Assembly: GCA_964035545.1 (NCBI GenBank)
Contig: OZ037767.1
Location: 941,680-1,005,679 of the forward strand
Reading direction: 5' to 3'
From: Bugula neritina
Taxonomy: Eukaryota > Animalia > Bryozoa
DNA: 64,000 nt
Positions within the stretch are counted from its first letter, which is position 1, and the number at the start of each line of letters is the position of its first letter. The notes under the pieces are model-generated. The model ran no database searches and had not been told where the DNA came from. It was given only the letters and a program-made list of their open reading frames with translations. Shown in pieces: positions 2,903 to 57,862 of the stretch. Made by a program: the position numbers and the translations under genes.

Positions 2903-3226
2903 GAGTACTGTAGGTACTACTATGAGTACTGTAGGTACTACTATGAGTACTGTAGGTACTACTATGAGTACTGTAGGTACTACTATGAGTACTGTAGGTA
3001 CTACTATAAGTACTGTAGGTACTACTATGAGTACTGTAGGTACTACTATGAGTACTGTAGGTACTACTATGAGTACTGTAGGTACTACTATAAGTACTGT
3101 AGGTACTACTATGAGTACTGTAGGTACTACTATAAGTACTGTAGGTACTACTATGAGTACTGTAGGTACTACTATAAGTACTGTAGGTACTGCTATGAGT
3201 ACTGTAGGTACTACTATGAGTACTGT
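2903..3226. repeat. 21-bp intronic minisatellite (GAGTACTGTAGGTACTACTAT)
   Basis: About 15 copies, ending just before the Rh acceptor at 3237. Confidence 0.95.
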
Positions 3227-3237
3227 TTATGTTTTAG

Positions 3238-33300: not shown

Positions 33301-36300
33301 TCGTGCAGTCACTACTGATGATTAGCGGCACTATCACGCTGACGGTCTACGGTAAACTCAAGGCAGCACTTTCTAACAGCGCTTTGTATCAGAACTAAAA
33401 TCATAAAGTGACAACATTTGAAATTTCCTAACCTAGTGAATCTACCCATCATGATCAAACTTGTTAAAAAAGCGCAGATTTAAAACATATCTGCCGTATT
33501 TTACTTCAACCCAACTGCTGTCTATGATAAGCTTCCCCTTTGGGCTAGATATTTAGTCGATACATGATTGATATAGAAGAATGCCTTCATTCGTTTCCTT
33601 AACTAAAACCTTTGCTGTTTTAACTGCCATTTTTAAACCGAAAGTAAAAGATAAATTAATTATTTCAGGATTCAATTTGATTGGTGGATATAATGAGATG
33701 CTGGAAAAGTATCCCAATGCAGTCGACTCTGTACTGAATAATCGAACTAACAGGTTTACCTTCCTACCAATTATACACTACAACTGGACTGTTGGCTTGA
33801 TATTAGAGTTCTTTGTTGTGTTCATAGCAGGCCTGGTTTATAATATCATCAATGCAATAATATTATATAGTAGTCAACTTTATTAGTTGTCAAAATTAGC
33901 CTACTTTTTCGAGCATACCATATATAGAACTTAGTCTATAGCCTTATCGTACATTTCTCAAACTGAGCGATTCCAGCTCTTCTATTCCTGTAATGTGAAG
34001 CTGACATTGATTCTCTGTTAACGTAATTCCAGCACAGAAGTATGTCGGGGAGCAATACCCGGCCCGTACCACATGATCGTGTACAATCCCAACAACTCTA
34101 AGACTTTGCCTAGTTTGGGGTATATCGGGATATTCATCATGGCCATCTGGTACTGGTGTTGTGATCAGGTATATAAATGAGTTGAATTACTAACTTTAAC
34201 TGAATGAACACTACTCTCTAACTAAGTTGAAATATATAACAAACTCTAAAGTTTTTAATTAAATTGTTTTTCAACTTTTTTACTGTAAATTTGCTGAAAC
34301 AAAAATCAATAACAGCATGACCTTTATAGTTCAGTGTTTGACCTCTATAGTTCAGTGTTTGACCACTATAGTTGATTACACGACCTCTATAGTTGATTAC
34401 ATGACCTCTAGGTGATGGTACAAAGAGCTCTAGCTAGTAAGAATTTGACTCATGCAAAAGCTGGCACAGTCCTGGCCGGGTTTCTCAAAATGCTGCCATT
34501 ATTCACCTTGGCTTTCCCCGGAGTCATCAGTCGAATAAACAACCCAGGTAATTACAAACAAAGTATAGCAACAGCATTGTGTCTTAAACTGTTGGGCAAA
34601 GTAATGCAAATTATTTTAAAACGATCTGTAAAATTTTATTCAGCAGAAATGTTACGTTTTTCACAAAATATTATGTAGATTATATATGTTTGTAGACATC
34701 ATAGCCTGCGCCAGCCCTGAGAGGTGCAAACTAGCCTGTGGGAAAGAAGACTGCAGTCACATGGCTCTACCCCTCCTCGCGTACTCTGTCTTTGAGAAAG
34801 GCAAGTTTGTTTATAGAGGGAAACTGAAGGAGTTACTGCACAAACTTCTTTACAAATATAAGCCGTATTTTGCCCTATATTGAAGTTATGTCCCTTGTTT
34901 TTGGAAACCTCAAAAACTGTTGAAACTTTATTTAACTAAAATTGTCAGGTGCAAAAGGTTAGACATTTGCTTAGCTTAGGTGTATAAGATTTGGCTTGGT
35001 GTTTTGGTTTGAAGCATCCAGGGCAAAACCTCATGCTGCAAATATTGTTTACTAGCACTAATGCTATCTGAAAAATATGTAACATACTCTAGAAAGACTT
35101 GAGACTTCTAATCTAATTATCTATAACTGGCACACAGTTAGTACCCAGTGACTTAGTCAGTACTCAGGAGTACCCAGTGACTTGGTGAGTACTCAAGAGT
35201 ACCCAGTAAGTCACTGGGTACTTATCAAGTCACCTGAAGCAGTTAGTTACTAAGTTTATACCTTACAGCATGTTTTTTGTTCTTCTCAACCAGGGGAAGG
35301 GCTGAGAGGATTTTTCTTAGGAGTGATGCTAGCATCTCTGGCTTCCTCCATGACGTCTGTGTTCAACTCCAGCTGCACCATCATATGTGTGGACATCTGG
35401 AAGAAAGTGAGACCACGAGCACAAAACAAAGAGCTGATGATTGTTGGAAGGTAAAAGAAATATTAGAGCAGAAGCAAGTATCACCGTTCCCAGTAGTTGG
35501 GTAACTTTGAGACTCTTGGCAAAAAATCGGTAACTGTGTGAAAGCTTTAAACAGTATTAAGTTTCTCTAAACAGGCTTTCAACAGCGCACGTGCTGGTAA
35601 AAGTTTTATCTTTCAAGGTAGTAGTTCTTGGCAGAATAAAGAGAATACAATAGAGGTCTGGTTTATGTCTACTATCACACTATAGCAAGTATTTTACAGC
35701 CCTGTATCCACAAGGTTTTTATTTCTGAATTACGTGTGTTGCCAGTTCATGCTCAAGGAGTAATTAGTAACTAGTTGTGGTAAAAAGTGCTCTTGGTTAC
35801 CCAAACACACTCTTTAACACAACTACCCAAACAATGTGAATGTTATACAAAGCTGAAGTCAATGCTAAAGTTATTTGAGACTGGGATAATTTGCCATCTG
35901 TTACAGCTGTATTACATGGCTGATTATTGCACAATATTCACTGTGATTGTGTTTTTCAGCCAAAAACAAATAAAACTTAAATTAGATCAAATTCATCAAG
36001 TCAAATTTTGATTAAAATTCACACAAATTTAACTCAAGTGTATTCAGTAATTTAGTAATATACTGTTTGACCTTCACATTGCCCTTGATTTAAAACAATC
36101 TACCACAACTACTCATCTCTATACTTCTACGATATGTTATTGACTTTCTGGATCTCTCCAGATGCGCCCCCTGTGTGTTGCAGAGTGTCCATTCTACTGA
36201 TGGTAGCAGCGAGCACCCTTTGGGTGTTGGTGCTCAACTTGCCAGAAAACTTTGATGACTTTTTCCACTCAATCCAGAGACTGACTGCCTTCTTCACGCC

Positions 36301-39300
36301 TCCTATAACAGCGGTTTTCATCACAGCTCTGTTCTGGAAAAGAACCACAGAAAAGGTGCAGCTTTACTTGATTTCTTATGTCAAAGTTGATGACAATTAT
36401 GAACAGCCTTGTATTTTAGTGGCAACAAACCACTTGATTATATTTCACACTAATCTACATTCACAGAGTTTATTTGCTCAAAGTCAAACTGACCTCAATC
36501 AAGCTAGTGAGCCACCTTCTTTGTCTCGTTATTTTATATTTGGTAACTTTGGAGTGGATGCCTACAGGTGTTTATCAAATAGCTTATAAGAATATAAAAT
36601 ATGAAGAGCCATTTGTGTAATAATGTGGATAGGTACTGGTTGTTACATGGTAAACATTTAAAAACTAGCAGCTAAAATTGCGTTATAGAACCTAAGATAA
36701 GTTAAAACAGATATTGTGAGTTACCTTTCATATACAAGAACTTTTGGACAAGCCTGCTTGATATAAGGAGGATAAAGCGTGCTCACTGCAAACAGCAATA
36801 AAAAAGTCGGTTTCACCGACAGTTGGTACAATTACTATCAAGTCTTTCACATGAATCACACTTCACTTGATGTAACGTCTGTAAACTTCAACAATCTTCC
36901 ATATTTTTAGGGAGCTTTTTATGGTTTGATGATCGGAACTGTGGCTGGACTAATTCGACTGATCCTGGAAAAATCTTACCCGAGTCCTAAATGCTCAGAA
37001 GATACAAGACCTGACATACTGAAGAACTTCCATTACCTTTACTTCTGTACCTGTTTGTTTGTTCTTTCCCTTCTGACTATTGTGGTGGTGTCATTGCTTA
37101 CAGACCCTATTGATCCCAAACATGTGAGTTGATCAACTTTATTACATCTTGTCTTCCTCAACTGCCCAAACACTTCACTGAATGTATTACCATGATTTTA
37201 TATTCTCTCTTACAATTCTCATATTTTTACATCAAACAAAGTTGTGACTTGTAAGAAACATCACCATTTCAGAGAGCAATAATATATAATCTAGCTTTTT
37301 GTTCATCTCTCTTAGCATCCTTGGATAGAATGCAAGCTGCATCATCTACTCAGTGTAATTTTCCCACATGTTTATTTGAGACACTAAATGGCTATTTCTG
37401 CAATGTTACAGCTTCCCAAGTTGATGTTCCAGACCCGGAAAGGCAAGTCCGATCAAAAGAAACAGAGTAAGTCTATTATGTATGCATATGAAGGTATTTG
37501 GTTGGTGGTTTCTGACTGTTTCTCCAGTTATCCAACCATCAGGGTTGCCCCTAGACTCCCTCTACACTCTACAGTATGTTGTGATCAAACCAGCTAAGCT
37601 AAAGCATTGTCTTCGCCCACTTTACACATGTGTATTATGCTTGTGATAAATTATGTTACATGCATGTTTTCTAGAAGGAAAATTTGAAGTTGAGAATCTA
37701 AACATATCGGAACCAACAACTGATGAAACATCCGGAAAGACAAAAACCAAAAGAGTGTCATTCATCGACGTTAAGTTAAACTCGGCAGTTTCCACATCAA
37801 CTGAATTCAATGCGTCTGAAAACTCCGAAGATGTGACGATTAATAACCTAGACTCTCCTCCAAGCTGCGAGCAGACCACCGACAGGAATACAGGTGAGCT
37901 CTAACAATTGCTGCTTAGTAACACATCATCTGTACATACACCAACACACTCAATAAAACTTGCTACTATAAATATGCTCTCTGTGCGGTAAATACTTGTC
38001 ATCTGGAACAACATTACAAGAGAAGACAATAAACATGGCATACATACAAATAAGAAATCGTTCTATTTTGGTGCAAGCTCCTTATACAGTGATTGAATCA
38101 AAATAGCCCAGCACATCTGCAGTGAACTACTGTAGTTGTTATGCAATGTACTTGACGACAAGGATGTGTTTCAGCTGGGCCAAGGGCTGTGTATATTATG
38201 ACTCAGAAGCTCTTCATGGCATCACCAGTAGTCCAGCTCGGGTTCGAACCCGTGACCTTGCACACACTAGGTCATCTAGTGCTTCAGCTGCTAGCCATAA
38301 GTAGAAATATTTACAATGAAATACAGCAAACTTTTCAGCTGTATAGTAATACAACACGAATGCCTTGGTCCATGTTGATGCCTTTTCATTTACCAATGTT
38401 TAAATAAACTGCACTATAAATTTAAGATTTGATTTTTAAAAAATGACAATTTTGTTATAAAGGGTCATCCAGTGAGTACAGTATTGACGGTGACTTAACG
38501 ATGGTGCCTACTCCGCCGTTGGAGTTGAAGACCGAAGAAGATGAAAAGAAGGAAGATGAAGGTTAGATAGCAAGGTCGTTGGCATGCCAAGGACATTACC
38601 ATTATTTTGGCTTACCTATTAAAAAGTTTAGCGGAATTATTCTAATCAAAATATTGTTGTCAAACAGTTGTAAAATCACATGCTACAATTATATAGGCTA
38701 ATTAGAGAGTGCTAACCAGGACCTTCTATGATAGATCTCCTGCACCAAAGAGCTTGTTCTTCTGCTGCACATATATTTATTGTATATCTCAGCAGCAGGC
38801 AAACTTCATTTCAACTTATTTACTCACTAAACAACTGACTTGTCATGGGAGAGAACTCTCAAAAGTGTGTTATGTTGGAATATTGGCTGCTAACTCAAAA
38901 CTGCACCCTTTCAGCATGTCTAAAATTCCTTGCAAATTGTAAATAGAATGAGTTGCATAACTTAAGTTAGTGTACAAAAACTCGAAAGATTTCGGTAAAT
39001 AGTTCTAAAAAAACCTTCTTTAAAGTTGTTGCTACTTAAGTGAATTCATTTTAAAATTTAAAATTTCTTTTCATTTTAGCTCACGCTAAGATGTTGGCAG
39101 ACGAGAGCATTATTTCGAGGATAGTGCACTACGTTTCGGGAACTGACCAAGTAATCAGGTCCGAGGAGACCCATCTTAGCGAGCGAGTGGCTTCAGAGAA
39201 AGCTAGGTCTATCATTGAGAGCACAACTTCATATTACGTTTGTAACATTGCTGCATTCTTGTTGGACACTGTCTCTATTTTCATTCATGTATACTGGTCA

Positions 39301-40230: not shown

Positions 40231-42310
40231 CTAACGTAGACGAGTCCTCTTTTGAGCAGGCTCAGTGTCCGTGTCACCACCAGGGGTCACTTCCATGTCA
40301 AGGCTGTTTCCATGGTTACTCGCGCTTTCACCTACGACGGTATTTGTAGCACTGCCTTCCACTGTTTCCACTTTTACGTTTTCTCCTGAAGTTTCTGCTG
40401 CTGCCAGGTCTTTGTCGGCAGCGAAGAGACTAGTGGTGCGCACTTTCTCCAGGGCAGTCACTGGGTGGACAGTAGACAGCATGCATGACTCATAGTAGAC
40501 AGCATGCATGACTCATAATACCATTTCTATCTGCAGCTGCCACAGTCACTCTCACAGTCACTCTCACAGCTACTCTCACAGTCCCTCTCACAGTCACTCT
40601 CACAGTCACTCTCACAGTCACTCTCTCAGTCACTCTCACAGTCACTCTCACAGTCACTCTCTCAGTCACTCTCACAGTCACTCTCACAGTTACTCTCACA
40701 GTCACTCTCACAGTCACTCTCACAGTCACTCTCACAGTCACTCTCTCAGTCACTCTCACAGTCACTCTCACAGTCACTCTCACAGTTACTCTCACAGTCA
40801 CTCTCACAGCTACTCTCACAGTCACTCTCACAGTCACTCTCACAGTTACTCTCACAGTCACTCTCACAGTCACTCTCACATGATACATCTTAACAAACCA
40901 TCATCATATATCTTTTAGTAATTCCACATATACAGGTATAAAAATGCATTTCTTGAGCAAAATTTAACCCCCTTCTTGATGAAGTTATATATAATATTTA
41001 ACCCACTGGACAGCTTAAACTATGAAACAAGAGATGTGGAATGCATCACGACACGACATTCACGCTACCGCTGCCTAAGGTAGAGTAAATATTCGCACCT
41101 TGCTGTTCCATCATGAGACCCTGACTTTTGAGTAACTCTATATCCGTGATGAGTTTGTTGTTCTTCCTCTTTAGCAGTACTATGTATTCTGTGGCTTTCT
41201 TCAGCGCTTGTGCTCTTGAACACTGTAACATATATTACTATATGCATCATATATTACTATATGTAATATACTATATGTAACATACTATATTACTATATGT
41301 AATATACTATATTATTACACTTACCCTATAACTGTTGATTGTGGGTAGACAACTCATAAGAGTGTTGAAACTGTCTTTTATGTGGTCCCGCCTTTTCCTC
41401 TCCAATGCATTGTGGTGCGCTCTTTTGTCAGCCTGCATACCACAATTGCATTATACATGGTTACTAGTAAGTAGTGACTACTAGTCAGTCACTAGTAAAT
41501 AGTGAGTACTAGTTAGTAGTGAATAGTGAGTACTAGTTAGTCACTAGTAAATAGTGAGTACTAGTCATTATTGAACAGTCACTTGATGCTATAAGACCAG
41601 AGCGAGTAGATATACTGCCCTAACAGCCACTTGACCCTGGAGAAATATACATATAGCCCCAGAAACAGACCAACACAAGTATTGAGCAAACTTACAGGCG
41701 TTGGGTCTGATATCACCACATCAAATAAATCTGTGATATTCTCATCCAATGGGCCACTCCCTTCTTCATCCTACAGGCAGCATGTTACATAATACAAAGT
41801 ATGTCATGGCAGTATATAAAGGTTATAATGGATAGTAATATCTAAAAATAATAGTAAAATTACAGTTGAAGACAATTAGTTAAGAATTTCATGGTGCTAT
41901 AGACAGTACAGCTGAAGCTAACTTAAGTTACTACGGTACTATATCTGTCATACTACTCTATATCCAAAACACCTGTAGAAGACACAAACTAAACATATAC
42001 ACATGTATGTATTTCCACAAGGATAGAAGACACTAACTAAACATATACACATGTATGTATTTCCACAAGGATAGAAGCCACTAACTAAACATATACACAT
42101 GTATGTATTTCCACAAGGATAGAAGCCACTAACTAAACATATACACATGTATGTATTTCCACAAGGATAGAAGACACTAACTAAACATATACACATGTAT
42201 GTATTTCCACAAGGATAGACGCCACTAACTAAACATATACACATGTATGTATTTCCACAAGGATAGAAGCCACATACCTGATCTATATCCACATATTCTT
42301 CATCACTCAT
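40231..42310 (-). CDS. MAX: MAX (MYC-associated factor X), bHLH-Zip
   Basis: Approx. exons 42310-42278 ([11 protein letters not shown]), 41771-41696, 41432-41325 ([22 protein letters not shown], the MAX basic region), 41223-41098 ([13 protein letters not shown]..zipper), 40461-40231 (VTALEKVR..., basic C-terminus KRTRLR). Confidence 0.92.
40540..40880. repeat. 12-bp minisatellite (CACAGTCACTCT)
   Basis: About 28 copies in the last MAX intron. Confidence 0.95.
41975..42272. repeat. 48-bp minisatellite
   Basis: About 6 copies directly after the donor of the first MAX coding exon. Confidence 0.93.
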
Positions 42311-44789
42311 ATTAAAAATTAAACACAACTACTTAATGGACCAACTTGAAGATCTAGAAACAAACAAAAATAACAAACAAGTAAGTGTAAATTTTAAAAT
42401 TGAACTACAAAGATTGGGTATAAATATATATAACATCATGATTCTATTTCACCATTGTTTCCATAGCAGATGTCACTTTAAATTTCAAAACAAAAGAAAA
42501 TATAAAAAATATAATTATTAGACAAAATCAAAACACACAATCTATCTAACACTCGCTTCTCCACTTACTCTAAGAATTCAACTGGAAAATAATTTATACA
42601 TTATATATGGTCTCACTCTAACTGCATAAATTTTATTTGCATTCCTAAAATTACAGTATGTTAATACACATTATGATTATACAAGGACATACTAATAGCA
42701 CTGCGTTGAAACGCTTCCAATTTTAGCTATAACCAGTACCAGTAGATGTAGTAGTACTAGTATCTGTGTTGAGTAATAACAGTTACTTATATTTATAAGT
42801 TATAACGTAGATGTAGTAGAACTACAACCAGACGTAGTAATTGTAGTTACATCAACATATTGAGATAATGATATGGCTCACATTTAACCGACTTCTACTT
42901 AACGTTAGCCAAACTCACTTAAAAATTACTAATTAGTAATATGAGTCTGAGTGTTACTATTACTATTAGTATAACTATAAGTATAACTAATTCACAATTC
43001 AATATTTATATTTGTATACATTTATTTAGTCGCACATTGGGCAGCACTTATTGCTAATATGCTGGCTAAGACATTTAAATCTTGAGGAGTACCGCTTTCT
43101 CCAGAATTTAGTGTTGCAGTAGCTTTTTGGCAGTTTTCCAAAAATCATTGTGTAACGAAAGCTATTTGTGAAAGCTTTCGGGATAGCTATTTACTGATAG
43201 TTTTGGTCGATGAGTCAGTGTAGCTCAGTTTTCCTCCTGCTAAAGATGCAGGCAATCTATACTTAATTGTCAAAATAATTGTAAGTATTAAGTATTATAT
43301 TATCTTTTGAACTTCATTAACTAAATGTTTTGTCAGCTATGTAATTAATGTTAAGTTAACAAGATTTTTGTAATTTTCATGGTTATAGGTTACAGTAAAG
43401 TACAAGTACAAGTAAAGTACGAGTATGAGTATGAGTGCAAGTATGAATGAAGTCTAACTTAGAAAATATACTGTTGGCAATAAACAAAAATAGAGTTGTG
43501 GCCTGCATCTGTGTCCTCCATTCATTCACCCCTCATTAATTTTGAGTGAATCACAATACATAGGCATCCGTGCCAAACAGCACCCGTGCTGACGCAGCAA
43601 CAATTATCAGCTGATACAGTAACCACTATCGGCTGTCACATTTAGTACTTCCTACAGACGAAGATGTAAGATGTAACTATAACGATAACTACTATAGTCT
43701 ATAAGTATTACTATTAGTATTAATAATAATGTTGACATTGTCATTATCATTATCATTATGATTATCATTAAATGATTAATCTCATGATTATCATTACCAT
43801 TAACTTCAAGTTTAACTTTAAAAAACTAAAATAAAAATTAAACTGAAAAAATAACTTTATACTTTATAGTTTTAAAGTGGCAATCATTGAAACTATGATT
43901 ACAATCACTTTTACTAGCGCATAATCAGTGCATACTGCATAGCCATGGCATACGCCATACAATATTCACACTGATACTCATAGACCTCTACTAGGAGAAA
44001 CTGGGATAGCCTAAATTCTTCAACTTTATTGTTAAATTTTAGTTTGGGGCGCGGGTTAAAATTCTTGCGAAGGATACTTATACTCAATCTCATACTGATA
44101 GTCTCAGTCTTAATTGAAATTGATAAAATTTCAAATTGACAGTCTGATAATCGTGGTCATTGGGATTGTACTTTTACTTCAGTACTGATACTTGCAGAAT
44201 TAAAACGTAAAAGTAGTCAATATTAATTATTATTATAAGTATAAGCAGTACTGTTGGTATTACTATATAATTTTGATTGTATCATCATTATTATATCTAT
44301 TACTACTACTACTAGTACTAGTACTAGTACAGTATGAGTAGACGTAGTACTATCTAGTATCTAGTATCTTAGAGTTAGTCTTACTATGACTATCTAGTTT
44401 TACAAGTACAGTTCCAACTTAGAGTTAATAATGCTACTAGTACTACTACTAGTGTCTAGTAGTACTACTATTACTATTAGCAGCCTATGGCTATAGGTAG
44501 GTATGGGGTATCAGCATACAAATGTGAATATGGCCATGCATTCAATTTTAAAAACACTCCTCTTTTAATTACTTATTTTGAATTAAACTCATCAAGGTAG
44601 CACTGATTATCATTGTGATTATAAATAAATAAAACAAATGAGATTCAGAATTAAAGTTTCACTTGTCTTTTAACCATACAGCATGTTAAGGATGAATAAT
44701 TTGAATTTCCAACTGTAATCGTGTTGTGTTGGCATCATCTTGTGATTGATTTAATTATTATTACTTCTAAATCATACTACCTTTAGGTT

Positions 44790-45730
44790 GCAGAGCATAA
44801 AACTAAAAGCCATGGTCAAGAAAATGATCTTATCGAATCATCAGGTTTAGCAGAGCAAATGCTAAAAGAGATAGAAAGAGATCCAAGTAAGCCAACTAAA
44901 AGAATCTTTGACGGAACATACATGTAAATGTTTATCAAGTTCCAAAGTATCACAAAGTGAAGTCAAGATTAGTAAGAAAGAGAGCGTTGCTGAACCCTGC
45001 CATACCTCATGAAACATCTGATGTGGAAATTGTAGGACAATGGAAAAGAACGTGGGCGTGAAGTAGATTTATCTCTCACCAAGATAACCAGTGGGGATCC
45101 TTGTATTTGAAACCAAAAAATGTTTAAGATGTTGCAACAATGTAACATTTTATATGTTGATAGGACATTTAAAACCTTACAAACCGATTATTACAATCCA
45201 TGGGTTATTTCATGGAAGACCTCTACATTTGTAATGGCCCTCATGGGAGGAAGACAGTGGGACAGTATAGACAGCTGTTTCAGCATGTTAAAAGCAAAGT
45301 GAGGGAAGTAACAGGTCACCATTGGTGACCAAAAAGAATCGTATCTGACTTTGAAATTTCTCTCATCACAGCTATTGAAACAGAGATGCCCTAAGTCCGA
45401 ACATCCGGGTGCTATTTTCATTTGTATCAAAGTATGTGGCGTAGAATTCAGCATGTTGGCCTCAGTAGAGGTTACAGGTGCTGTAACCGTCTTCGAGAAA
45501 CGCCTAAGGAAATTTATGGCTATTGGATACTTGCCTCTAGCGTTGATCTGACAAAACTTCCGATTGCTAGCCACTTCAAACTCAACGCAGCAATTAGTAG
45601 CCCGCCACCCTGCTCTGCTAGAGTTTATTAGACACAGGAAACAAAATTATCTAAATGGGCAGTTTCCTCTAGCCTTTTGGATTGTATTTAACCGGAATGG
45701 TGACTCAAGAACCAACAATAATGTTGAAGG
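44790..45730 (+). pseudogene. Decayed Mutator/MULE-family transposase
   Basis: Fragments in shifting frames: ILYVDRTFK (cf. DGTFK), SDFE, GCYFHLYQSMWRRIQHVGL (cf. GCxFH), RTNNNVEG. Interrupted by frameshifts and stops; no TIRs found. Confidence 0.8.
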
Positions 45731-46099
45731 TAACGTTATTGTTCTTCCAGGCAATAAAAATATATATTTGTAAATGAAGAAAGTGTGCAATATAGCCATA
45801 TATTAGCCCTCAACTAAGGGGTTTTCCTTCCTTACACAATTGCCCTAGCTCCTGTTTGAGTTTGTTTATGGGACTTAGTCTGCTGTAGCTCAAATAATTA
45901 ATTGCTTTATAGTGTTCAAATTCCCAAATAATATTTTGTGTCTATGTTAGGTAAACCCTGATGAATTTAAAATTGTCCTGGATTCATAGGATGTACTGTT
46001 TGTACGTACTGACTTGTTTTGGAGAAACTTCACAAACCTTTTGTGTTAATAGAAATTTTAATATTTGTTCTATATTGATACTATAATCTAACTATAGAC

Positions 46100-46392
46100 T
46101 TGCTATAGACTGACTATTTACTATTTATAGACTGACTTTAGACTAGCTATATACCAACAGTAGACTGACTATAGACTAGCTATATACCAACAGTAGACTG
46201 ACTATAGACTAGCTCTATACCAACAGCAGACTGACTATAGACTAGCTATAGACTGACTATAGACTATCTATATACCAACAGTAGACTAGCTATAGACTAG
46301 CTATATACCAACAGTAGACTGACTATAGACTATCTATATACCAACAGTAGACTGACTATAGACTATCTATATACCAACAGTAGACTGACTAT
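46100..46392. repeat. Minisatellite (TAGACTGACTATAGACTAGCTATATACCAACAG)
   Basis: About 8 copies of a ~33-bp unit. Confidence 0.88.
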
Positions 46393-46900
46393 GTAGAAAA
46401 TCTAAGGTTTGCACAGTCTGAAAGTATCTCATACAAATAATACTGAACTCTACTCCTTTGTAGGCAGACAGTCAACAGTCCAAAAATAAGGGAAAACAAC
46501 TGTGAAATGTTCACTAAGTGCTACAGGGAGCACAACTCCTAACAATAGTGTACACAATACCTCGCACACAGACAGTACTCAGAACATATTATCAAGACAG
46601 AGTCCACATGGTACACATCCAGAGAGCTCAGACTGGAGAGAGTACACATCTGTCCACGGTAGCTACACCTCTCTTGTGTTATGGTATACTCTTCTTATTG
46701 CACTGTGACTGGTGATGTGATAGTGACTGGTGATGTAATAGCTTAAGTTCTCTACTCCAGGTGTCAGCGGTGCATTAAATCACAGTCTAAGTTGAAGGTG
46801 AGGTCATGTGAATATTTGTTAGTAGTTTGAGAACATCATAAGTCTTGCTTGTTCCTCTGTCTGGGTAAAATAATTCTATATAGTTTATTAGCATAATGTC

Positions 46901-47112
46901 TAGTGTGAGTACTTGGTAGTGTGAGTACTTGGTAGTGTGAGTACTTGGTAGTGTGAGTACTTGGTAGTGTGGGTACTTGGTAGTGTGAGTACTTGGTAGT
47001 GTGAGTACTTGGTAGTGTGGGTACTTGGTAGTGTGAGTACTTGGTAGTGTGAGTACTTGGTAGTGTGAGTACTTGGTAGTGTGGGTACTTGGTAGTATGA
47101 GTACTTGGTAGT
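46901..47112. repeat. 16-bp minisatellite (GTGTGAGTACTTGGTA)
   Basis: About 13 copies. Confidence 0.93.
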
Positions 47113-47743
47113 TTTGAGTTTAGTATGTATGCAATGAGCCTTAGTTTATATTTTCATACTCCGATGATTAATTTTAGGCTCTGGTCTTATACGTCCACAG
47201 CCTTGGGTTTGGTTAAAGGAAATACGAAATAGTTTCAAACTTCCTACGGCATAAAATATCTGACCTTCCTTTAGAACAGACATTCAGTGATTTAGATTTC
47301 CAGAAACAAGAAATGTTTTATATTCAAGAGAGGTGACAACTCCCTCTATTCAGTGTCTAACCAGCTGAGATAGTTTTTCAACTATTTATAAAAAGTATTC
47401 TGCAGTCAGTAGAGGAAATTTGTCTAATCTGTGCTGTTTATGTTGCTATAGCAACAGTATTGTATTTATAGTTTATCTAAGTTACTTTATCTTCGCTATG
47501 CAAATACTGGTTAGTTGTTGAAATGTCTTTTACTTTATTTGACAGTTTGTGAATATTAAATTTAGAATGCATTTTTAGAATTTTGAACAAAGTGCACATT
47601 AAAACACAAATAAATGCCAACTAGCTACTACGTTATGTTATTTCTCAAATGTAGGAGTTTGTTAATTTCATAGAAATTCTTTTAGTAATATCATATTAAT
47701 AGTTAATTTTAGTCTTTGTTGCTGGCTTTCGAAACGAAGAGGC

Positions 47744-50078
47744 TTACAGCTCTGTTTTGATTTCAGCAGACATCTTGTTTCCTGTGTGTGTGTCCAGCTC
47801 AGTGTCAGGGTCATATTCCTCGGGCTGTTTGTGTCGGAACTTGTAGACTAAACAAAGGAGTGCGAATATCGCTAAAATATAGATATAGTATAGATACAGA
47901 CTAGAGTGTACTTTTAGATATAGTAAACTTGTAGATATAGTAAACTTGTAGATATAGTAAACTTATAGATATAGTGTAGATATAGTATACTTGTAGTATA
48001 GATATAGCACAGGTCATTCTAATGATATAGGAAAATATAATTGTAATAGTTGCTCTCAACTCTTCTACACTCTTGGATTCAGAGAGTATAAGGGAGTAAT
48101 GTATTATTATTTTATACTGGCCACTGATGGGCTCATTTGTTATGATTATTTTAGAAAAATGCCTGTTGTCCCACTTTTGGTTGATAAAACTTCTTGTGAA
48201 AAGTCAATAGTTAGTCTGGATTGAGGAACTTAAGTTTAGGATTCTAACTTTGACGAGTGAAGTTGCTCAATTAGCACCAGGAAATCATATTAGGAGTGCC
48301 ACAATCGGCTGGCTTGTCTAAGAAAATAGTTACATCTTGATATAAAGGGTTCAGTTTTTAAAAATAGTGTCCAAGGCACATGTATTCGTGTTTTTCACAT
48401 GACAAAATGTATCATATTTTCAAAATGATAAAGGAATAGGTTTTAAAAGTGGAAGAGTTGGAAAGTCGAAGAATTAGCTCAGTGGTAGTGGCTTGGTTTT
48501 GTGAATTCAATTGTTTTGTGGATTCAAAACTCAGCTATTTTTGAAAAAAAAAGCTTTTTACATAAATATTTCATAATGAAAAGCAGTAGGTTTTAAAAGT
48601 GTTGAATGAAAAGGGTCAAGCGGTAGCTCAGTGTTAGAGGTCTGATCTTGTGATACTGCGTTTTGTGGGTATAAAACAAGGTTATTTATTAACAAATAAT
48701 ATTTTTTCTATATAAATACTTTCAAAATAAAATTTAAATAGGTTTTATAAGTGTAGAGAGGGAAGGTACAAGCGGTAGCTCAGTGGTAGTGGCTTAGTCT
48801 TGTAATCCTATGTTTGAGGGTTCAAGTCTCCACCTCTGTGTGGAGCTTACCTGGGTGTATTTATTTGTGTATATTTTGCTGTAAAATAGATTGAGTTGGT
48901 AAGAATTAGATGAACTAGTATGTCTTCCTAAAAGGGGGACCCAAAGTAGCACAGTGGTAGAGCCCATGTCAAAACACCTCAGAGGTGTGGGTTCAAATCC
49001 AGGTTGCGATTGACTCATTGAAGTCTCTTGCTGAGTCTCATTCTAGACCCCTCTCTCAGGCACTCTTTAAACCAAAAATAAATTATTTTGCTAAAATTTA
49101 GTATTTTCAGAGAAAATTTTAGCAAAATAATTATTTCTTATTGGCCCTCGCTGGTTTAAAGAATGCCTGAGAGAGGGGTCTAGAATGAGACTCATAGGAG
49201 ACTCAGCAAGAGACTTCAATGAGTTAATCGCAACCTGGATTTGAACCCACACCTCTGAGGTGTCTTGACATGGGCTCTACCACTGTGCTACTTTGGGTCC
49301 CCCTTTAAGGAAGACATACTAGTTCATCTAATTCTTACCAATTCAATCTATTTTACAGCAAAATATACACAAATAAATACACCCAGGTAAGCTTCACACA
49401 TAGGTGGAGACTTGAACCCACCAACATAGGATTACAAGACTAAGCCACTACCACTGAGCTACCGCTTGTACCTTCCTCTTTTATACTTATAAAACCTATT
49501 TAAATTTTATTTTGAAAGTATTTATATAGAAAAAAATATTATTTGTTGATAAATAACCTTGTTTTGAACCCACAAAACGCAGAATCACAAGATCAGACCT
49601 CTAACACTGAGCTACCACTTGACCCTTTTCATTCAACACTTTTAAAACCTACTGTTTTTCATTATAAAATATCTATCTAAAAAATTTTATTTTAAAAATA
49701 ACTGAGTTTTGAATCTAATTTTATTATAGAAGAAAATAATATTTGTCAGAAAATCACCAAGTTTTGAACCCACAACAAATTAATTAAAATACATATTTTT
49801 TGATATTTATAATTATTTAATTTTATTATTTGATGTATGACTATGAGTCATACAGTACTACTCACAAGTAATTTGCACATTTCACAATAATTGAGCTTAA
49901 ATGTGTCTCCATCAAAATTTTGCTTTTGCGATGGCCAGTTTTCCAAGGCAGATTTTTACAGACGTTTCAACTCTTTGCTGAATACAATGAAACCTATCCT
50001 CACTAAGTATTTATTATCACAACCATTATAGCTGATAGAATTACCTATGATAAACACCAACAGGAGAATATAGGGAGT
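47744..50078 (-). CDS. Two cryptic coding exons (50078-50045, 47871-47744): TM helix plus tail ending KTEL; possible alternative 3' end of SGPP
   Basis: AG/GT boundaries are phase-compatible. Joined translation: TPYILLLVFIIAIFALLCLVYKFRHKQPEEYDPDTELDTHTGNKMSAEIKTEL*. Confidence 0.5.
48521..49715. repeat. ~1.2-kb inverted repeat built from tandem tRNA-like units
   Basis: Arms ~48521-49098 and ~49112-49715 are reverse complements with scattered mismatches and short indels. Each arm has repeated TAGCTCAGTGG / GGGTTCAA box pairs. Confidence 0.92.
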
Positions 50079-50559
50079 CTAGAGCACTCATCCATGTATA
50101 AATGCATACAAATGGAAACTCATAGACAATAAAGGAAAAAACATAAACTTTACTAGAATAAAAATAAGATTGAACTTTAGCAGATTGCTAGGCTAGGTTT
50201 AATGATCACTTCTCTACCTTTATAGTATAACAAAACATAAAAAATGTAGAAGGAAACTTAAGATAAGAGGTTAAAGTTCACTGCAAGTAGTTGCTGAAAT
50301 AATAGGGGCAATAACTCCTAACACATCTCACTTGAAGCATTCATTATGCATTAAATAATCGGCCAAATACCCTGTAACACTTGTGCTTTAGTAAAACATT
50401 TAAATACTATTTCTACAGATAACCGTCTACGGGTAATATTCAACTGCAGGTGGCCTTCCCAGAGTGCAATTGGCAGCTGGGTTACGGAATGGTGCGTATT
50501 TACAACAGAGAGCATACTATCCTAGTGTGTATAACTAGTTTCTAGTTCCTAGACCGTCA

Positions 50560-53500
50560 TTACAGCTCTGTCCAACAGGTCGGCCTCTCAATATCAAAGT
50601 ATCTGAATATAAGGGGAGAGAGATAGACTACGTTGAGAGAAATAGCACAGTAAGTGAAGTATTTGTATGGCAGCTCAACTATCATCAGCTTCTTGTTCTT
50701 CTCGTATTCCTCAGGTTTTAGTCTGTACAGCCAGCACGATATTTTATAAGTCACTTGTTTCATACTCTACAGAACAGAGAATAACGTGGTGTGACACAGT
50801 AATACTAATCTTATGTATAACATGGTGTGACACAGTAATACTTATTCTATGTTCTTAAGAATAATGGGAATAGCTGAATTATATTCGCATATTATTAGTT
50901 ACAGGTTAAAAACATATCCATGACAATTACAGTACAATGCAAGTTAATTACTGATGAACATATTTATTTTGAATTAAGACCACCTATCTATAAATAACAG
51001 CTGAAATAAAGATATTCAAACAATACACTCGGAGTAAGATAAGTCTCTCCACATTTCCCAACTATTTGCTAGACACGACTTTAATCAGACTTACAGCACG
51101 AGTGAGAAAGAGAGAGCTGTAGCCAATCACCATGCGCAGCAGAGCCATCTTAGCCCACTCAATATCGGGTGTCTTGATGTGGTAGGGTGGAGACCCAACC
51201 AGCTCCACCCCGTCATGTGGAATGAAGTTGTTTTGGTAGTTGATCCATGAGGCTATAGCCACGCCCACTTGCACCCCTGCAATACACGCCCACTTGCATG
51301 GTAATGCTGCCTGTATTACGCTATAATACTGCCTGTAATACGCTATAATATAACATGTAATACCTTGAAATATAACCTACAATACTTGGTTATATAACCT
51401 GTAATACGCTATAAAATAACCATTGGTAGACCATAGAGTGGTTTCAAAGACCAATTTCTTAATTTTTAAATGTTCAATAAAAGAACAAATTTTAAGATAA
51501 ATTCGTGTAACTTTTGTATTTTTCATTATCTACATTGAAACTTTAAAAAATCTTTTGAAAATTTATGCCAACATGGGAAGTTTTGCTACTCACAAAGTTC
51601 TTTATACATATTTACCTGTCAAAGAGCAAGGTGCAACAACTCTAAAAATCAAATATGCTTAGAAAACACATCCCAGATTATAAAGACTCAGAGAAACCTT
51701 GGAGGACACTATACAGAGAGACTTGGTAGTTGCCCACCCCTGTTACTATCAGAATGTGTTAAAGGAAGTGTTAGTTGGATATGAATTAGATTGTGTTTGT
51801 GTGACAGAAATACCATTTCTCAATGCTATGGTAGATGCATACAATTTCAAAAGCATTTCACAAACACCTTAAGAATTATCCTCTCTTTCAATTTGAACAT
51901 AGGATAACTCCTACAAGTTAATTTATAAACAATGACAGTGGAAGAGAATGACTGGTAGCCGTGTTGTAAGATTCTGGAATATGGCAAATCACCACACTGA
52001 CTGTTGAGATGACGGACAGCAACAGAGAAATCACATTAAACAGTTGACAACAAATAACTTGAAGAGGTAACACTGACAGGTAACACTGTCAGGTAACATC
52101 AACATGTAACATAAAAAGAGAAGACAAGCTATTGCACAAACCCTGACTATGATATGAATACATAATGTGACTTAACAAGAAATAACATGGTAACGCATGT
52201 AGTAGTGTAACGCAATGTAAGGTCCATGAGAAGATAATTGCAGAGGCAGTCAAATTGATTAGATGATCATACAGGTACAGAAAGAGAGTCCCATAACCCA
52301 CACATGCTGCTGGTTAAATTATCTGGTAATTAGAAGAATTAGCATGGAACAGGGTGTTACAACAGTGGTACAGTGGTATTGGCTACACAATAAAACATCT
52401 CCCATCACCAAAATCACTATCTAAAACTATATGGCCAAAATGCATTCATCTAAATATAGCTCAGTGGTGGTGGTGGTGGTTGTTTCAACCAAATTATATG
52501 CACTACATCTACTGGGAAAAGCAGTGGATAATTAGCAACTAGGCAACACAAATGGCCATGCAGTTAAAGATAATGATGGGGCAGAGGTGCTGTTGTAGAA
52601 CTGTTATTATGAATAGGCAAATAGCAACAGAATTGGCTAAATTAGATTTGTACGTACCAAGTGTTGCTACAGTGTCGCCCCTACAAGTGCTCCAGGAAGG
52701 CAATCCTATAGCACATTATACAGAATTATTAGTCTGTCCTACTTGTTGCTCAGTGGCATTCAGTATTACTCAGTAATGACTCAGTAGTACTCAGTAATGA
52801 CTCAGTAGTACTCAGTAATGACTCAGTAGTACTCAGTAATGACTCAGTAGTACTCAGTAATGACTCAGTAGTATTCAGTAATAAATCAGTAGTACTCAGT
52901 AATGACTCAGTAGTACTCAGTAATGACTCAGTAGTACTCAGTAATGACTCAGTAGTATTCAGTAATGACTCAGTGGTATTCAGTAGTACTCAGTAATGAC
53001 TCAGTAATATTCAGTAATGATTCAGTAGTGACTAAGTAATACTCAGTATTACTCACTGATGACTCATTAACGACTAAGTAATGACGACTCAATAACAACT
53101 AACAGTCACGACTCCATGTACGCTCCTACCATTTCCAATCTGACTGAGAAATACTGTAACTGTATATAGACCGGCAGAAACAAAATAAGCGCGTGCAAAG
53201 CATAACCTGGCAACGCAGAAAGAGGACACAACTACCACAAAAGCAGCAAAAACAAAATTCCATCCCGGTTTAAAAAGAGTAGAGCACAAAAACTTAGTTA
53301 CGTGTTAGTTTAGGATTTACTAGAAGTTGAAAGAACTAGGAAGTCGATGTAATGCATACGCACAGTCACTATATCAAGGTATGTGGAGACAACTGCTAAG
53401 ACAGGCAGCGGACACAACAGCTAGGTATCCATAGAAACAGTCACTTCCTGGCATGCAGACAGTACTAGTGTAAGTACATACAGTACTAGTGTAAGTACAT

Positions 53501-56500
53501 ACAGTACTAGTGTACGTACATACAGTACTAGTGTAAGTACATACAGTACAAATGTACATACAGTACAAGTGTACATACATACAGTACTCATATACGTACA
53601 TACAGTACTCATATACGTACATACATAGACTAGTGTACGTACATACAGTACTAGTGTAAGTACATACAGTACAAGTGTACGTACATACAGTACTCATATA
53701 CGTACATACATAGACAAGTACATACAGACATAGAAGAGAGAGATGTGACATGGAGTGATCTTCATGTACTTACGAACACTTTAAATTGGAGATGTTGCAA
53801 ATGAACTTGGACTATGATAATAAGATAAGCTACATAGAACAGTGATATAGTAGCAGCAGCAGTAGAAGGAAAAGTAATAGTAGTAGTAGTACTAGTGGTG
53901 GTGGTAGTGGTGGTGGTAGTGGTACTGGTGGTGGTGGTGGTAGTAGTAGTACTAGTAGTAGTAGTAGTAGTAGTTGTACTAGTAGTAGTTGTAGTAGTAG
54001 TAGTAGTAGTATTAGTAGTAGTAGTAGTAGTAGTACTAGTAGTAGTAGTAGTGGTAGTAGTACTAGTAGTAGTAGTAGTAGTAGTACTAGTAGTAGTACT
54101 AGTACTAGTAGTAGTAGTAGTACTAGTAGTAGTAACTGGTAATAAAACTGAAAGCAAAATGAAATAAAGAGTTGAACTGAACTAAGACTAGAGTTAGAAG
54201 GTCAGTAGGATGCTGACTCTACAAAGGCCAAGAGAATGCTGACTCTACAAAGGTCAGTAGAATGCTGACTCTACAGAAACTCGATCTAGCACTAACACAA
54301 CTTCCTCTCAAAGGAGCTCCTAGCAGAAGAGTAAAAGTTACAACAGCTTATTTCGATGAATCAAATGAAATCAACATAGCTCTGGTTGGCTAGAAGAGGT
54401 TGAGTCGTGTTAGTGATTATTCACAGTGAGTGAGTGAAGAGATCAATGTGATAGACAGATAATCATTGGTGACTGTGGCTAGTGACTACAGGAAATGTAA
54501 ACAACCTGTTACTATGACAACTTACCGAGTATGAGCATGGTGTCTCCCCTGCAAGTGCTCCACTCGTCTATGCGGGGGTACATGAGGGCAGCAAGCACTG
54601 TGACAGCAACCATGACAAAGGGGGCGTACTGGTGCTTCAGCTGAAACTCATCTATCCAATCAAGAGCCGGTATTATGAATATCATCAGTATGGTAGCCAA
54701 ACCTAGCCCGGCCAACACGTCCTAAACAAGAGAGGAGATACAGAGTGTAGGATACAAGTATAACATATACTAAAGGATAAATCATACTCGATTAAAACAA
54801 ATGGTAAAGGTGATGTACTTGTAGCAAAGTCTAGGAGAGATCTCAGTGTCTGGTTGGCGTGGCGCCAGACTTTCTACAACAAGTCTGGTAGTTGTAAGGT
54901 TTCTGAGCCAAGTATCGCAAAACACAAGAGTTATCCCTCTCCAGTGATTTATCTCACTCGTCTTGAGATTGGAAAGAGACATTTTTTCAAGAGCAAAATG
55001 AACATCTTGATAAATGTTATTATTCTTGAATATTGTTTTTACTTTTTTCTCATCAACAAATCCATTTCCGTCTACTCATCGAAACAACATTATATTAAGT
55101 GTTGTAAATATGTATCAGGGTACTCTTTCTAGAACGTGTTTTGGTAAAGTAATAATTATAGGGAGTATAGACTGAACAGCTGATGGAGTCAAACTGGTTA
55201 GCGGATCAGAATATTGTCAAAGTTGTCTTAAAAGCAGAGTGTTATTGACAGTGCTAAGTGTTACAGCAGCCATTTTAGACTATTGTTAGTCTTTGATCCC
55301 CCATTGTGGTGTCACTTGAACTTTAGAGGGTTGAAGTTTGGACTAGAAGCCATTAGAGTTTGGACTGTATGCATCACAATGCCCAGCTTCTCTTAGTGCA
55401 AACATTGCACAAAAATGTTATAAATAGCTTCACTCCCACAAATATTGGGTTAAACACTGGGACTGCTTGTCCCCCCCCCCTTCTACTACTGTGTAGCTAA
55501 GACTAACAGAAACAATGTGAGTAGGGTAGAGATGGGCAAGGTTCAAATCCCCTAGATAACACTCTACTGAGTATGTAAGATAACAACACTCTACTGAGTA
55601 TGTAAGATAACAAGTGATGTACAATGTGGTATAGCAGCTAATGGGTGTTGGATCCATCAAAAACAATTCACTACAATGCTAATTTCATCTGGTGATTTTC
55701 TCTAGCATATCATAACAATTATGAATCATAAATATGATAAATAAAGAGTGAATTAGGAGTTGTCTCCTCATATAGAGTGTACCATAGTGATAATGACATG
55801 CCCCCTTTCCGACTTATACACATTGTTTTATACCAGTCTCTCATGTGTTATGTAGACTTCAGCTGTCCTAGCTTGGTTTGTATGCACTTTTATACTGCTA
55901 CCACAGTACCCTTTTATACTGCTGCTACAGTATCCTTTTATACTGCTGCCAGCAGTATCTTTTCAGTCAGCACAAAGGTGAATATTCTATTATGGGTTTT
56001 AATGAAAAAATTTGTGATATAAAAGTAAACAAAAAGTGAATGGAGTTACACAGGCAGTGGTATGTCCCTATTATATCATTTCCTGCCCTTATGGTAGTTT
56101 ACTGGTGGAAGAGTCAATACCCTGCTGCTATAGTAGTATAGCACAGCCAGACTACTCTACTGCTATAGAGTATAGCATAGCCAGACTACTATACTGCTAT
56201 AGAGTATAGCATAGCCAGACTACTGTACTGCTATAGAGTATAGCACAGCCAGACTACTGTACTGCTATAGAGTATAGCACAGCCAGAATACTATACTGCT
56301 ATAGAGTATAGCACAGCCAGAATACTATACTACTATAGAGTATAGCACAGCCAGACTACTGTACTACTATAGAGTATAGCACAGCCAGACTACTCTACTG
56401 CTATAGAGTATAGCACATCCAGAATGCTATACTGCTATAGAGTATAGCACATCCAGAATGCTATACTGCTATAGAGTATAGCACAGCCAGAGTATTTTAC

Positions 56501-57862
56501 TACTAGGTACTATAGTAATTAGGACTAAGTTCAGACTAAGTCTTTGTAGCAATAAATAACAGATGAATCACTACAAGTGAAAAGTAGTATTGATTCAACA
56601 GATGACCTCACAGGCTTCAGTCAACATGGCTAAGTTCTGTCAATAGTACAATATATTGTATAGAGTAGAGTGTATTATATTATATAGAGTAGAGAGTATA
56701 TTGTATAGAGTATATAGTACAATATATTGTATAGAGTAGAGTGTATTATATTGTATAGAGTAGAGAGTATATTGTATAGAGTAGAGAGTATATTGTATAG
56801 AGTACTATATTATATAGAGTAGAGAGTATATTGTATAGAGTATATAGTACAATATATTATATAGAGTAGAGAATATATTATACAGAATAGAGAGTATATT
56901 ATTATATAGAGTAGAGAGTATATTGTATAGAGTACTATATTATATAGAGTAGAGAGTATATTGTATAGAGTACGATATTATATAGAGTAGAGAATATATT
57001 ATACAGAGTAGAGAGTATATTGTACAGAGTAGAGAGTACAATATATTATATAGAGTAGAGAGTATATTGTATAGAGTACGATATTATATAGAGTAGAGTG
57101 TATTATATTATACAGAATAGAGAGTATTATATTATATAGAGTAGAGAGTATATTGTATAGAGTACGATATTGTATAGAGTAGAGAATATATTATACAGAG
57201 TAGAGAGTATATTGTACAGAGTAGAGAGTACAATATATTATATAGAGTAGAGAGTACATTATATAGAGTAGAGAGCAGACAACTTACAGCCACGCTGTGC
57301 ATACCCAGGTAGAGACGACTGAGACAGACACACAGACACCAGGCCAGGCCGAATGTGATGGCCACCTGGTTGTTCACCTGTAAAGTAGAGTAAACAGTGC
57401 TGTATATATGTATGTACACTGTATGTACACTGTATGTACACTGTATGTACACTGTATGTACACTGTATGTACACTGTATGTACACTGTATGTATGTATGT
57501 ACACTGTATGTACACTGTATGTATGTATGTACACTGTATGTATGTATGTACACTGTATGTATGTATGTACACTGTATGTACACTGTATATACGTATGTAC
57601 ACTGTATGTACACTGTATGTACGTATGTACACTTACTTCATATCTGTTTATACTGAAGTAGATAAACGCCCAGGGAAATGCCAGGCCTATCATAGCGTGG
57701 GTGGAGGGCATCCCATATTCCAGCTCATAGCGCTTTTCCATTCTCACTACAGGCGGGCTGGCTGGTCGTGGCAGCCTACAAAGGGCAATAGAGTGTAAAG
57801 AATATGGGCTAATTTCTCAATAGGTAAATAAACAGTACTAGTACTAGTAGTAGTAGTAGTAC

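Follow-up and report, generated by a model that had tools for sequence, protein, structure and literature searches.

How did a long, almost loopless palindrome built of transfer RNA (tRNA)-like units come to stand in the genome of a bryozoan, and does it serve any purpose there? This question is raised by a stretch of 64,000 nucleotides from Bugula neritina (assembly GCA_964035545.1, contig OZ037767.1, positions 941,680 to 1,005,679 of the forward strand), referred to as the window in the following, which carries an imperfect palindrome of ~1.2 kb at positions 48521-49715. We call the contig of the window C3 (the window being C3:941680-1005679) and the contig that carries a second copy C7; the whole assembly comprises 216 Mb. 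The explanation that we consider likely is a neutral one: the palindrome would be neither a gene nor a mobile element, but a palindromic duplication of a tRNA-pseudogene array that was copied once to another chromosome and has stayed symmetric through gene conversion between its arms.

Anatomy and tRNA origin of the arms

A first-pass annotation of the window had described the palindrome with its tiny loop, and a repeat search bears this description out. The search resolves the element into nested inverted repeats with an arm complementarity of 92-96%: a pair of 338 nt (48702-49039/49198-49535, 96%), a pair of 168 nt further out (48540-48707/49531-49698, 92%), a poorer outermost pair (48521-48570/49666-49715, 76%), an inner pair (49032-49074/49152-49194, 98%) and, at the centre, a short pair (49074-49099/49114-49139) whose arms are separated by 14 nt. 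The two arms differ by 4-8%, plus indels close to the centre. Besides one low-complexity pair, the window contains no other long inverted repeat, and 48521-49715 as RNA is predicted to fold into a single hairpin (-923 kcal/mol).

The left arm, which we call proximal because it adjoins the flank shared with C7, is indeed a tandem array with a period of ~150 bp (Tandem Repeats Finder period 152; direct-repeat spacings of 149-153). The motif AGGTTTTA.AAG opens the units at 48438, 48588 and 48740, and an A-box follows ~35 nt downstream of it; a fourth, different tRNA-like unit with consensus A- and B-boxes lies further inwards, as had been annotated (Table 1). Two other descriptions hold in part. 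Each unit had been credited with an A-box and a B-box-like site, and the A-boxes are all present (that of unit 2 with one mismatch), but left-arm unit 2 has no usable B-box. Likewise, the right (distal) arm was said to mirror the left; it does so for units 4, 3 and 2, which face inwards, but its outermost unit lacks the 5' half, an extra half unit follows at 49725-49775, and a repeat of ~113 bp has been inserted. This dispersed repeat (49777-49889) adjoins the distal end of the palindrome, contains a short palindrome of its own and occurs in at least 40 copies (73-87%) on many contigs; it looks like a miniature inverted-repeat transposable element (MITE) that was inserted at, or replaced, the outer end of the right arm.

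None of the units is recognized as a tRNA gene. ARAGORN reports 0 tRNA genes for the window and for the C7 loci alike, and Rfam gives no match at gathering score in the window and no tRNA match at E <= 10 over 47500-50700. Aligned end to end with the best unit, unit 2 of the C7 copy, the Rfam tRNA model scores 17.2 bits against a cut-off of 29 and leaves the acceptor stem unpaired, in line with the earlier statement that the units lack intact acceptor stems and are not tRNA genes. Their resemblance to tRNA-Thr(TGT), which had been noticed in the anticodon loop of unit 3, holds and extends further when they are compared with the tRNA-Thr(TGT) genes of this genome: the D, anticodon and T arms align in order, and with them the CTTGTAA loop of the anticodon arm, whereas the acceptor halves do not. 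Against a panel of 38 distinct tRNAs from the same genome, Thr(TGT) is the top match for 5 of the 7 tandem units tested, with scores of 32-50 compared to shuffle maxima averaging 19; unit 2 of the C7 copy reaches 50, and its shuffled versions 19 +/- 2.4 at best. The unit cores are identical to tRNA-Thr(TGT) at 41-46 of 59 positions, with a longest common word of 11 nt. Together, the alignment and the panel scores show that the ~150-bp units are decayed copies of tRNA-Thr(TGT) plus a spacer of ~75 bp, and thus pseudogenes rather than functional tRNA genes. Unit 4 has no Rfam tRNA match, and its likeness to tRNA consists of the boxes and a generic resemblance only; its best match in the panel is tRNA-Cys(GCA) (z 4.6-6.6), which in a panel of this limited size is not decisive for the isotype.

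Two observations on tRNA-like sequences elsewhere in the assembly may be added here. A first pass with the Rfam tRNA model returned ~18,700 candidates in the 216 Mb, which suggests that very many tRNA-like sequences (tRNA-derived repeats) exist elsewhere in the genome, with no sequence relationship to the palindrome units. Separately, a small contig, C214, carries at least 11 tRNA genes densely packed at a spacing of ~100 bp (41188-45349; loci L025 and L036); this run resembles an organellar, bacterial or phage arrangement more than a nuclear one, and the contig may stem from a symbiont or a contaminant.

The second copy and the pattern of substitutions

In the 216-Mb genome, the sequences of the palindrome occur at exactly two loci, in the window and at C7:970779-972300, whether BLAST is started with the C3 arm, with unit 4 plus the centre (E <= 10) or with the C7 arm. 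Four exact or near-exact pattern searches, covering each unit type, lead to the same two loci only, and two exact-pattern scans of metagenome contigs gave no match to the palindrome patterns. A dispersed SINE (short interspersed nuclear element) or foldback family is ruled out by these BLAST and pattern searches; in particular, since only two loci were found, the units are not a SINE family. They do share a tRNA-related head with A- and B-boxes, an unrelated tail and a unit length of ~150 bp with tRNA-derived SINEs, but differ from them in being local tandem units, without dispersed copies and with neither a simple-repeat nor a poly(A) tail at their end.

The C7 copy is itself a palindrome, with arms of 635 nt that are 99% identical. 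The arms are separated by 99 nt, which hold a 32-nt inverted repeat around a 17-nt loop, and this loop aligns with that of C3 at the edges and with the same polarity relative to the common flank. Such a flank exists on one side only. Window positions 45978-48345 correspond collinearly to C7 975324-972421, which lies on the opposite strand, and 44183-44702 to C7 978201-977787. Adjoining the palindrome, ~2.4 kb of this flank align well, and weaker collinear homology extends the common block to ~5.5 kb; in the locus-to-locus comparison, nothing is common to the two loci beyond the distal arm. The two palindromes are thus paralogous parts of one duplicated block, and the common one-sided flank shows that transposition of the palindrome alone did not take place. 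Nor does the block itself bear any mark of a transposon: no terminal inverted or direct repeats bound it, the homology between the loci fades at both ends with no sharp terminus and no recognizable duplication, and the three largest open frames of 45.2-46.7 kb have no Pfam match at E <= 0.01.

Three further observations concern the block and its surroundings. In the C3 block only, a dispersed repeat of 1.2 kb has been inserted at 44731-45975; it has copies on C2, C4, C5 and C6 at 85-90%, and its open frame of 127 aa has no Pfam match. Paralogous host genes as the source of the common block are ruled out by a tblastx comparison of the window with 90 kb around the C7 locus, which revealed no common coding exons outside the block. 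Lastly, 669 bp at window positions 17150-17817 are 95% identical to C7:965656-966320, ~5 kb from the C7 palindrome, and may represent a young dispersed repeat or a second small common segment.

Further evidence comes from a comparison of all four arms. In their alignment, which spans 48540-49100, 536 columns contain all four, and 442 of these are invariant. Differences common to both arms of one locus (AABB) account for 55 columns, whereas differences that follow arm identity across loci (ABAB) account for two, and the ABBA pattern for none. Changes in a single arm occupy 26 columns in C3 and 7 in C7, and other patterns the remaining 4. A C3 arm is, moreover, as similar to the non-corresponding C7 arm as it is to the corresponding one. 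This pattern is one of concerted evolution, and we regard, as the simplest reading of the sequences, a single ancestral palindrome whose arms have been homogenized within each locus. Units 1, 2 and 3 each have orthologues in the other arms and at the other locus, so the tandem array must predate both the palindrome and the duplication. When polarized by the other locus, single-arm changes run from strong to weak in 13 cases and from weak to strong in 9; with so few sites, no GC-biased signal is detectable.

The neutral history is supported by the tRNA-Thr origin of the units, by the two-locus distribution with its one-sided common flank, by the concerted substitutions and by a lack of extra conservation, to which we return below. 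In the order of events that we infer, a tRNA-Thr(TGT) gene with its ~75-bp spacer would first have been amplified into an array of three to four tandem units of ~150 bp; the array adjoined a second tRNA-like sequence, now unit 4, and all units would have decayed to pseudogenes. A duplication of the array in the opposite orientation would then have followed, about a short inverted repeat whose arms enclose an asymmetric spacer of 14-17 nt, seeding the palindrome at its present centre. Subsequently, a block of ~3.8-5.5 kb that reached as far as the distal side of the palindrome would have been copied to a second chromosome, yielding the C3 and C7 loci. Since then, arm-to-arm gene conversion would have held the arms 92-99% alike at each locus, whereas the loci diverged from each other by 10-25%.

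Short inverted repeats are known to seed palindromes in the ribosomal DNA of Tetrahymena and in palindromic gene amplification. Both loci resemble these systems in having, exactly on the axis of symmetry, a 26-32-nt inverted repeat whose arms are separated by a short spacer that is not palindromic. In contrast to them, the palindromes described here are small and interstitial, involve no amplified chromosome end, and suggest such a mechanism by their anatomy only.

Alternative explanations

Several points weigh against this history. Homogenization by gene conversion and selection for a hairpin predict the same pattern of matched changes, and the two would not be fully separable from the sequences alone. 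Near-perfect palindromes with loops of less than 20 nt are usually unstable, and that two copies have outlasted a divergence of ~10% may be a hint of selection. In addition, the A- and B-boxes of units 3 and 4 are intact in nearly all arms, which makes binding by RNA polymerase III (Pol III) or TFIIIC possible. Finally, the palindromes may have formed independently at each locus, at the same short inverted repeat.

We consider this last possibility unlikely. An ancestral single arm ending in the short inverted repeat would have been part of the duplicated block, and each locus would have turned palindromic separately afterwards, by fold-back priming or template switching, so that the arms of a locus would be alike because they are young. 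This would account for arm identities that are higher within a locus (92-99%) than between loci, for a between-locus homology that stops at the distal side of the palindrome, and for the 26-32-nt inverted repeat with its asymmetric spacer at both centres. It requires, however, that the same rare event took place twice and with similar extent, which is less parsimonious. Moreover, each distal arm closes with a tRNA-like unit or half unit (unit 0 in C7; 49725-49775 in the window) for which the proximal arm of the same locus has no counterpart, and it does not run on into an inverted copy of the proximal flank. The difference between the C3 arms, ~6%, also comes near one lineage's share of the ~10% divergence between the loci.

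Could some of the units still be active? Units 3 and 4 may be live Pol III or TFIIIC sites, giving rise to tRNA-like RNAs of ~100-150 nt or acting as extra-TFIIIC chromatin boundary sites, of which the mirrored arms would supply a symmetric pair. We think this quite unlikely, and it would be compatible with a neutral origin of the palindrome by duplication and gene conversion. In both units, the A- and B-boxes match the consensus at a tRNA-like spacing, with no internal T4 run and with a T4 run 45-85 nt downstream, and the boxes of unit 4 are identical in all four arms of the two loci. Yet a neutral divergence of ~10% together with arm homogenization would give the same conservation, which is no more than the neutral expectation: the cores are no better conserved than the spacers, and one C7 arm has three changes in the A-box of unit 3. 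Units 1 and 2 are poorer candidates still, with internal TTTT runs and weak or degraded B-boxes. The further idea that Pol III units converging on the centre yield double-stranded RNA fails, since the predicted left-arm (+) and right-arm (-) transcripts are near-identical rather than complementary, so that convergence gives same-sense RNAs; furthermore, T4 runs at 49086 (+) and 49124-49127 (-) are predicted to stop the transcripts before they would meet. A symmetric arrangement of this type is familiar from fission yeast, where centromere cores are flanked by inverted repeats with functional tRNA genes and TFIIIC boundaries, tens of kb apart. The likeness lies in B-box-bearing, tRNA-type units that are mirror-symmetric about a centre, whereas the units described here are pseudogenes and stand only 300 bp to 1 kb apart.

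Between C3 and C7, we see no extra conservation of the palindrome over the flank (74-88% identity, compared to ~90% in the flank at 46.1-47.9 kb), nor of the tRNA-like cores over the spacers (79-91% and 85-92%, respectively). By these measures, nothing points to a function. That the two palindromes are kept by selection, be it as intronic or downstream hairpin RNAs feeding Dicer or ADAR, or as TFIIIC-bound, symmetric Pol III boundary elements derived from tRNA-Thr pseudogenes, seems to us decidedly improbable. If it were true, they would represent the first such locus in a bryozoan, and compensation, instead of gene conversion, would explain the 55 matched changes.

The more specific proposal of a hairpin-RNA gene, to which we give little credence, holds that an RNA polymerase II transcript, either from a host-gene intron at C7 or by downstream read-through of a neighbouring gene at C3, folds back on itself and is processed by Dicer into regulatory endogenous small interfering RNAs (siRNAs). 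Foldback transcripts are Dicer substrates (PMC4408798). The long hairpin predicted for the palindrome, the retention of two copies and the 55 changes matched in both arms would all fit such a gene, as would the position of the C7 copy, which starts ~70 bp past a putative exon with a GT donor; this exon is our own reading, and its support from Pfam, in the form of immunoglobulin-like hints, is weak. No target is apparent, however. In a BLAST search of the 216 Mb, the arms match nothing besides each other and the sister locus, so that siRNAs made from them would target only the two loci themselves, and the longest word in common with tRNA-Thr is the 11 nt mentioned above. The same results speak against siRNAs directed at tRNA-derived SINEs, as had been suggested for this locus.

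The mismatches between the arms do not suggest a selected RNA either. A one-strand RNA hairpin under selection is expected to favour G:U mismatches on that strand, but no strand-biased tolerance of G:U is seen at either locus: the C3 arms have 11 G:U and 8 A:C mismatches next to 13 transversions, and the C7 arms 4 G:U, 2 A:C and 7 transversions. The palindrome is also not better conserved than its flank. Several matches at the centre (MIR2606, mir-944, MIR6288 and MIR5070 in Rfam) are, in our reading, not microRNA genes; they lie far below the gathering scores and fit any long hairpin. Drosophila hairpin-RNA loci have arms that derive from and match their target gene. In common with these loci, and with the foldback transcripts cut by Dicer, the palindromes are long, near-perfect inverted repeats whose transcripts would fold into a double-stranded stem, but their arms match nothing but themselves. 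Transcription of a host gene across the palindrome would give an RNA stem of 560-640 bp, which we take to be a by-product.

There is at best a slim chance that the palindrome represents a foldback-type transposon, either complete or as one end of a larger element, whose long inverted repeats consist of tandem subrepeats. In the Foldback (FB) elements of Drosophila, tandem subrepeats of a similar period (~150 bp) make up long inverted repeats that enclose hardly any loop; these elements occur dispersed, in varying copy number and between target-site duplications. The inverted arms of ~150-bp tandem units around a tiny loop recall FB ends, and a second copy does exist on another chromosome. The two copies in 216 Mb are, however, embedded in one duplicated block, with several kb of common flank on one side, and the palindrome has therefore not moved as an independent unit; neither inverted nor direct repeats terminate the block, its homology fades with neither a sharp terminus nor a recognizable duplication, and it shows no coding capacity in its largest open frames. 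The earlier proposal of an undescribed, multi-tRNA-headed foldback element is not upheld by this genome-wide picture. An assembly artefact from a chimeric fold-back read is scarcely credible, as the first-pass annotation had already argued from the differences between the arms: such chimeras do produce false palindromes in long-read assemblies, but here the arms differ by 4-8% plus indels near the centre, and the independent palindromic copy on another contig, 10-25% diverged and with the same order of units, in effect rules this explanation out.

Genomic setting and significance

The features of the palindrome and of the adjoining duplicated block are listed in Table 1.

Table 1. Features of the palindrome and its common flank, in window coordinates
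Feature	Position	Strand	Description
Outer part of duplicated block	44183-44702		More diverged from C7 (70-77%); split off by the 1.2-kb dispersed repeat
Flank common with C7	45978-48437		~90% identity across 46.1-47.9 kb, 74-84% nearer the palindrome; non-coding; 16-, 17- and 33-bp tandem repeats
Unit 1, proximal arm	48438-48586	+	Upstream motif; A-box 48475; degenerate B-box 48521; internal TTTT 48497 and 48514; T5 48538
Unit 2, proximal arm	48587-48738	+	Decayed tRNA-Thr(TGT)-like core; A-box 48624 with one mismatch; B-box lost; internal TTTT 48661
Unit 3, proximal arm	48739-48890	+	tRNA-Thr(TGT)-like core ~48770-48845; anticodon-loop-like CTTGTAA; A-box 48776; B-box 48819; first T4 48874
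Unit 4, proximal arm	48935-49012	+	Different tRNA-like unit, isotype uncertain; consensus A-box 48947, B-box 48990; no cloverleaf; first T4 49086
Proximal arm, inner non-tRNA part	49013-49099	+	Includes left half of central inverted repeat (49074-49099); lacks 13 nt present in the other three arms
Loop / symmetry axis	49100-49113		14 nt, asymmetric; edges align with the 17-nt C7 loop, same polarity relative to the common flank
Distal arm, inner part	49114-49224	-	Right half of central inverted repeat (49114-49139); 11-nt insertion relative to other arms
Unit 4' (mirror of unit 4)	49225-49302	-	A-box 49280-49290, B-box 49237-49247
Unit 3' (mirror of unit 3)	49347-49498	-	Mirror copy
Unit 2' (mirror of unit 2)	49500-49651	-	Retains B-box-like GGTTCAAAACA, lost from proximal unit 2
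Distal arm, truncated outer end	49652-49775	-	3' half of unit 1' (to ~49720) and extra unit-2-like 3' half (49725-49775)

Beyond the palindrome, Pfam detects a sodium:solute symporter exon at 36089-36586 (+) and a weak hint of PAP2 at 57135-57632 (-). A gene for a PAP2-type phosphatase appears to run on the minus strand from ~58.7 kb down, and the open frames 51065-51376 and 50563-50766 (-) look like its last exons, with no match for either frame in protein-atlas look-ups. On our own reading, the C3 palindrome lies ~0.8 kb downstream of the stop codon of this PAP2-like gene. Tentatively, a neighbouring gene would read into the palindrome from the distal side at both loci, but two cases are too few to tell this from chance. 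Two other open frames on the minus strand, 54515-54721 and 52542-52715, both encode a ...WSTCRGDT...LG motif and may represent an exon of the PAP2/phosphatase-like gene that has been duplicated or is used alternatively.

The window is also unusually rich in long mini- and microsatellites that are open in several frames (2891-3431, 14370-15164, 27000-28085, 40490-40918, 53374-54201 and 57000-57800), some of them within or beside probable exons, such as those of the PAP2-like gene at 57.1-57.8 kb. A high-copy repeat of ~140 bp at 43500-43645, with dozens of copies (87-93%) on all large contigs, probably belongs to a young SINE or MITE family.

In their behaviour, the closest known relatives of the two loci would be the palindromes on mammalian sex chromosomes that undergo gene conversion (PMC8600007, PMC8327919). 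As in the mammalian X and Y palindromes (PMC8600007, PMC8327919, PMC8981503), the arms of one copy are far more alike than those of sister copies, and differences between copies have been fixed in both arms (here, 55 columns compared to 2). The palindromes described here are, however, ~100 times smaller, with arms of 0.6 kb instead of 10 kb to 1 Mb and a loop of 14-17 nt instead of a kb-scale spacer, and they contain no genes, only tRNA pseudogenes.

With no function indicated, the palindrome opens no long-standing question. It calls for caution in annotation, as arrays of A- and B-boxes and long hairpins can mimic Pol III or small-RNA genes while being neither. Above all, it offers a clean, small-scale case of concerted evolution in a palindrome, in which two paralogous copies serve as mutual outgroups. 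Arms of 0.6 kb around a loop of 14-17 nt can evidently persist, homogenized, through ~10% divergence, which bears on the stability of short-spacer palindromes in animal genomes.

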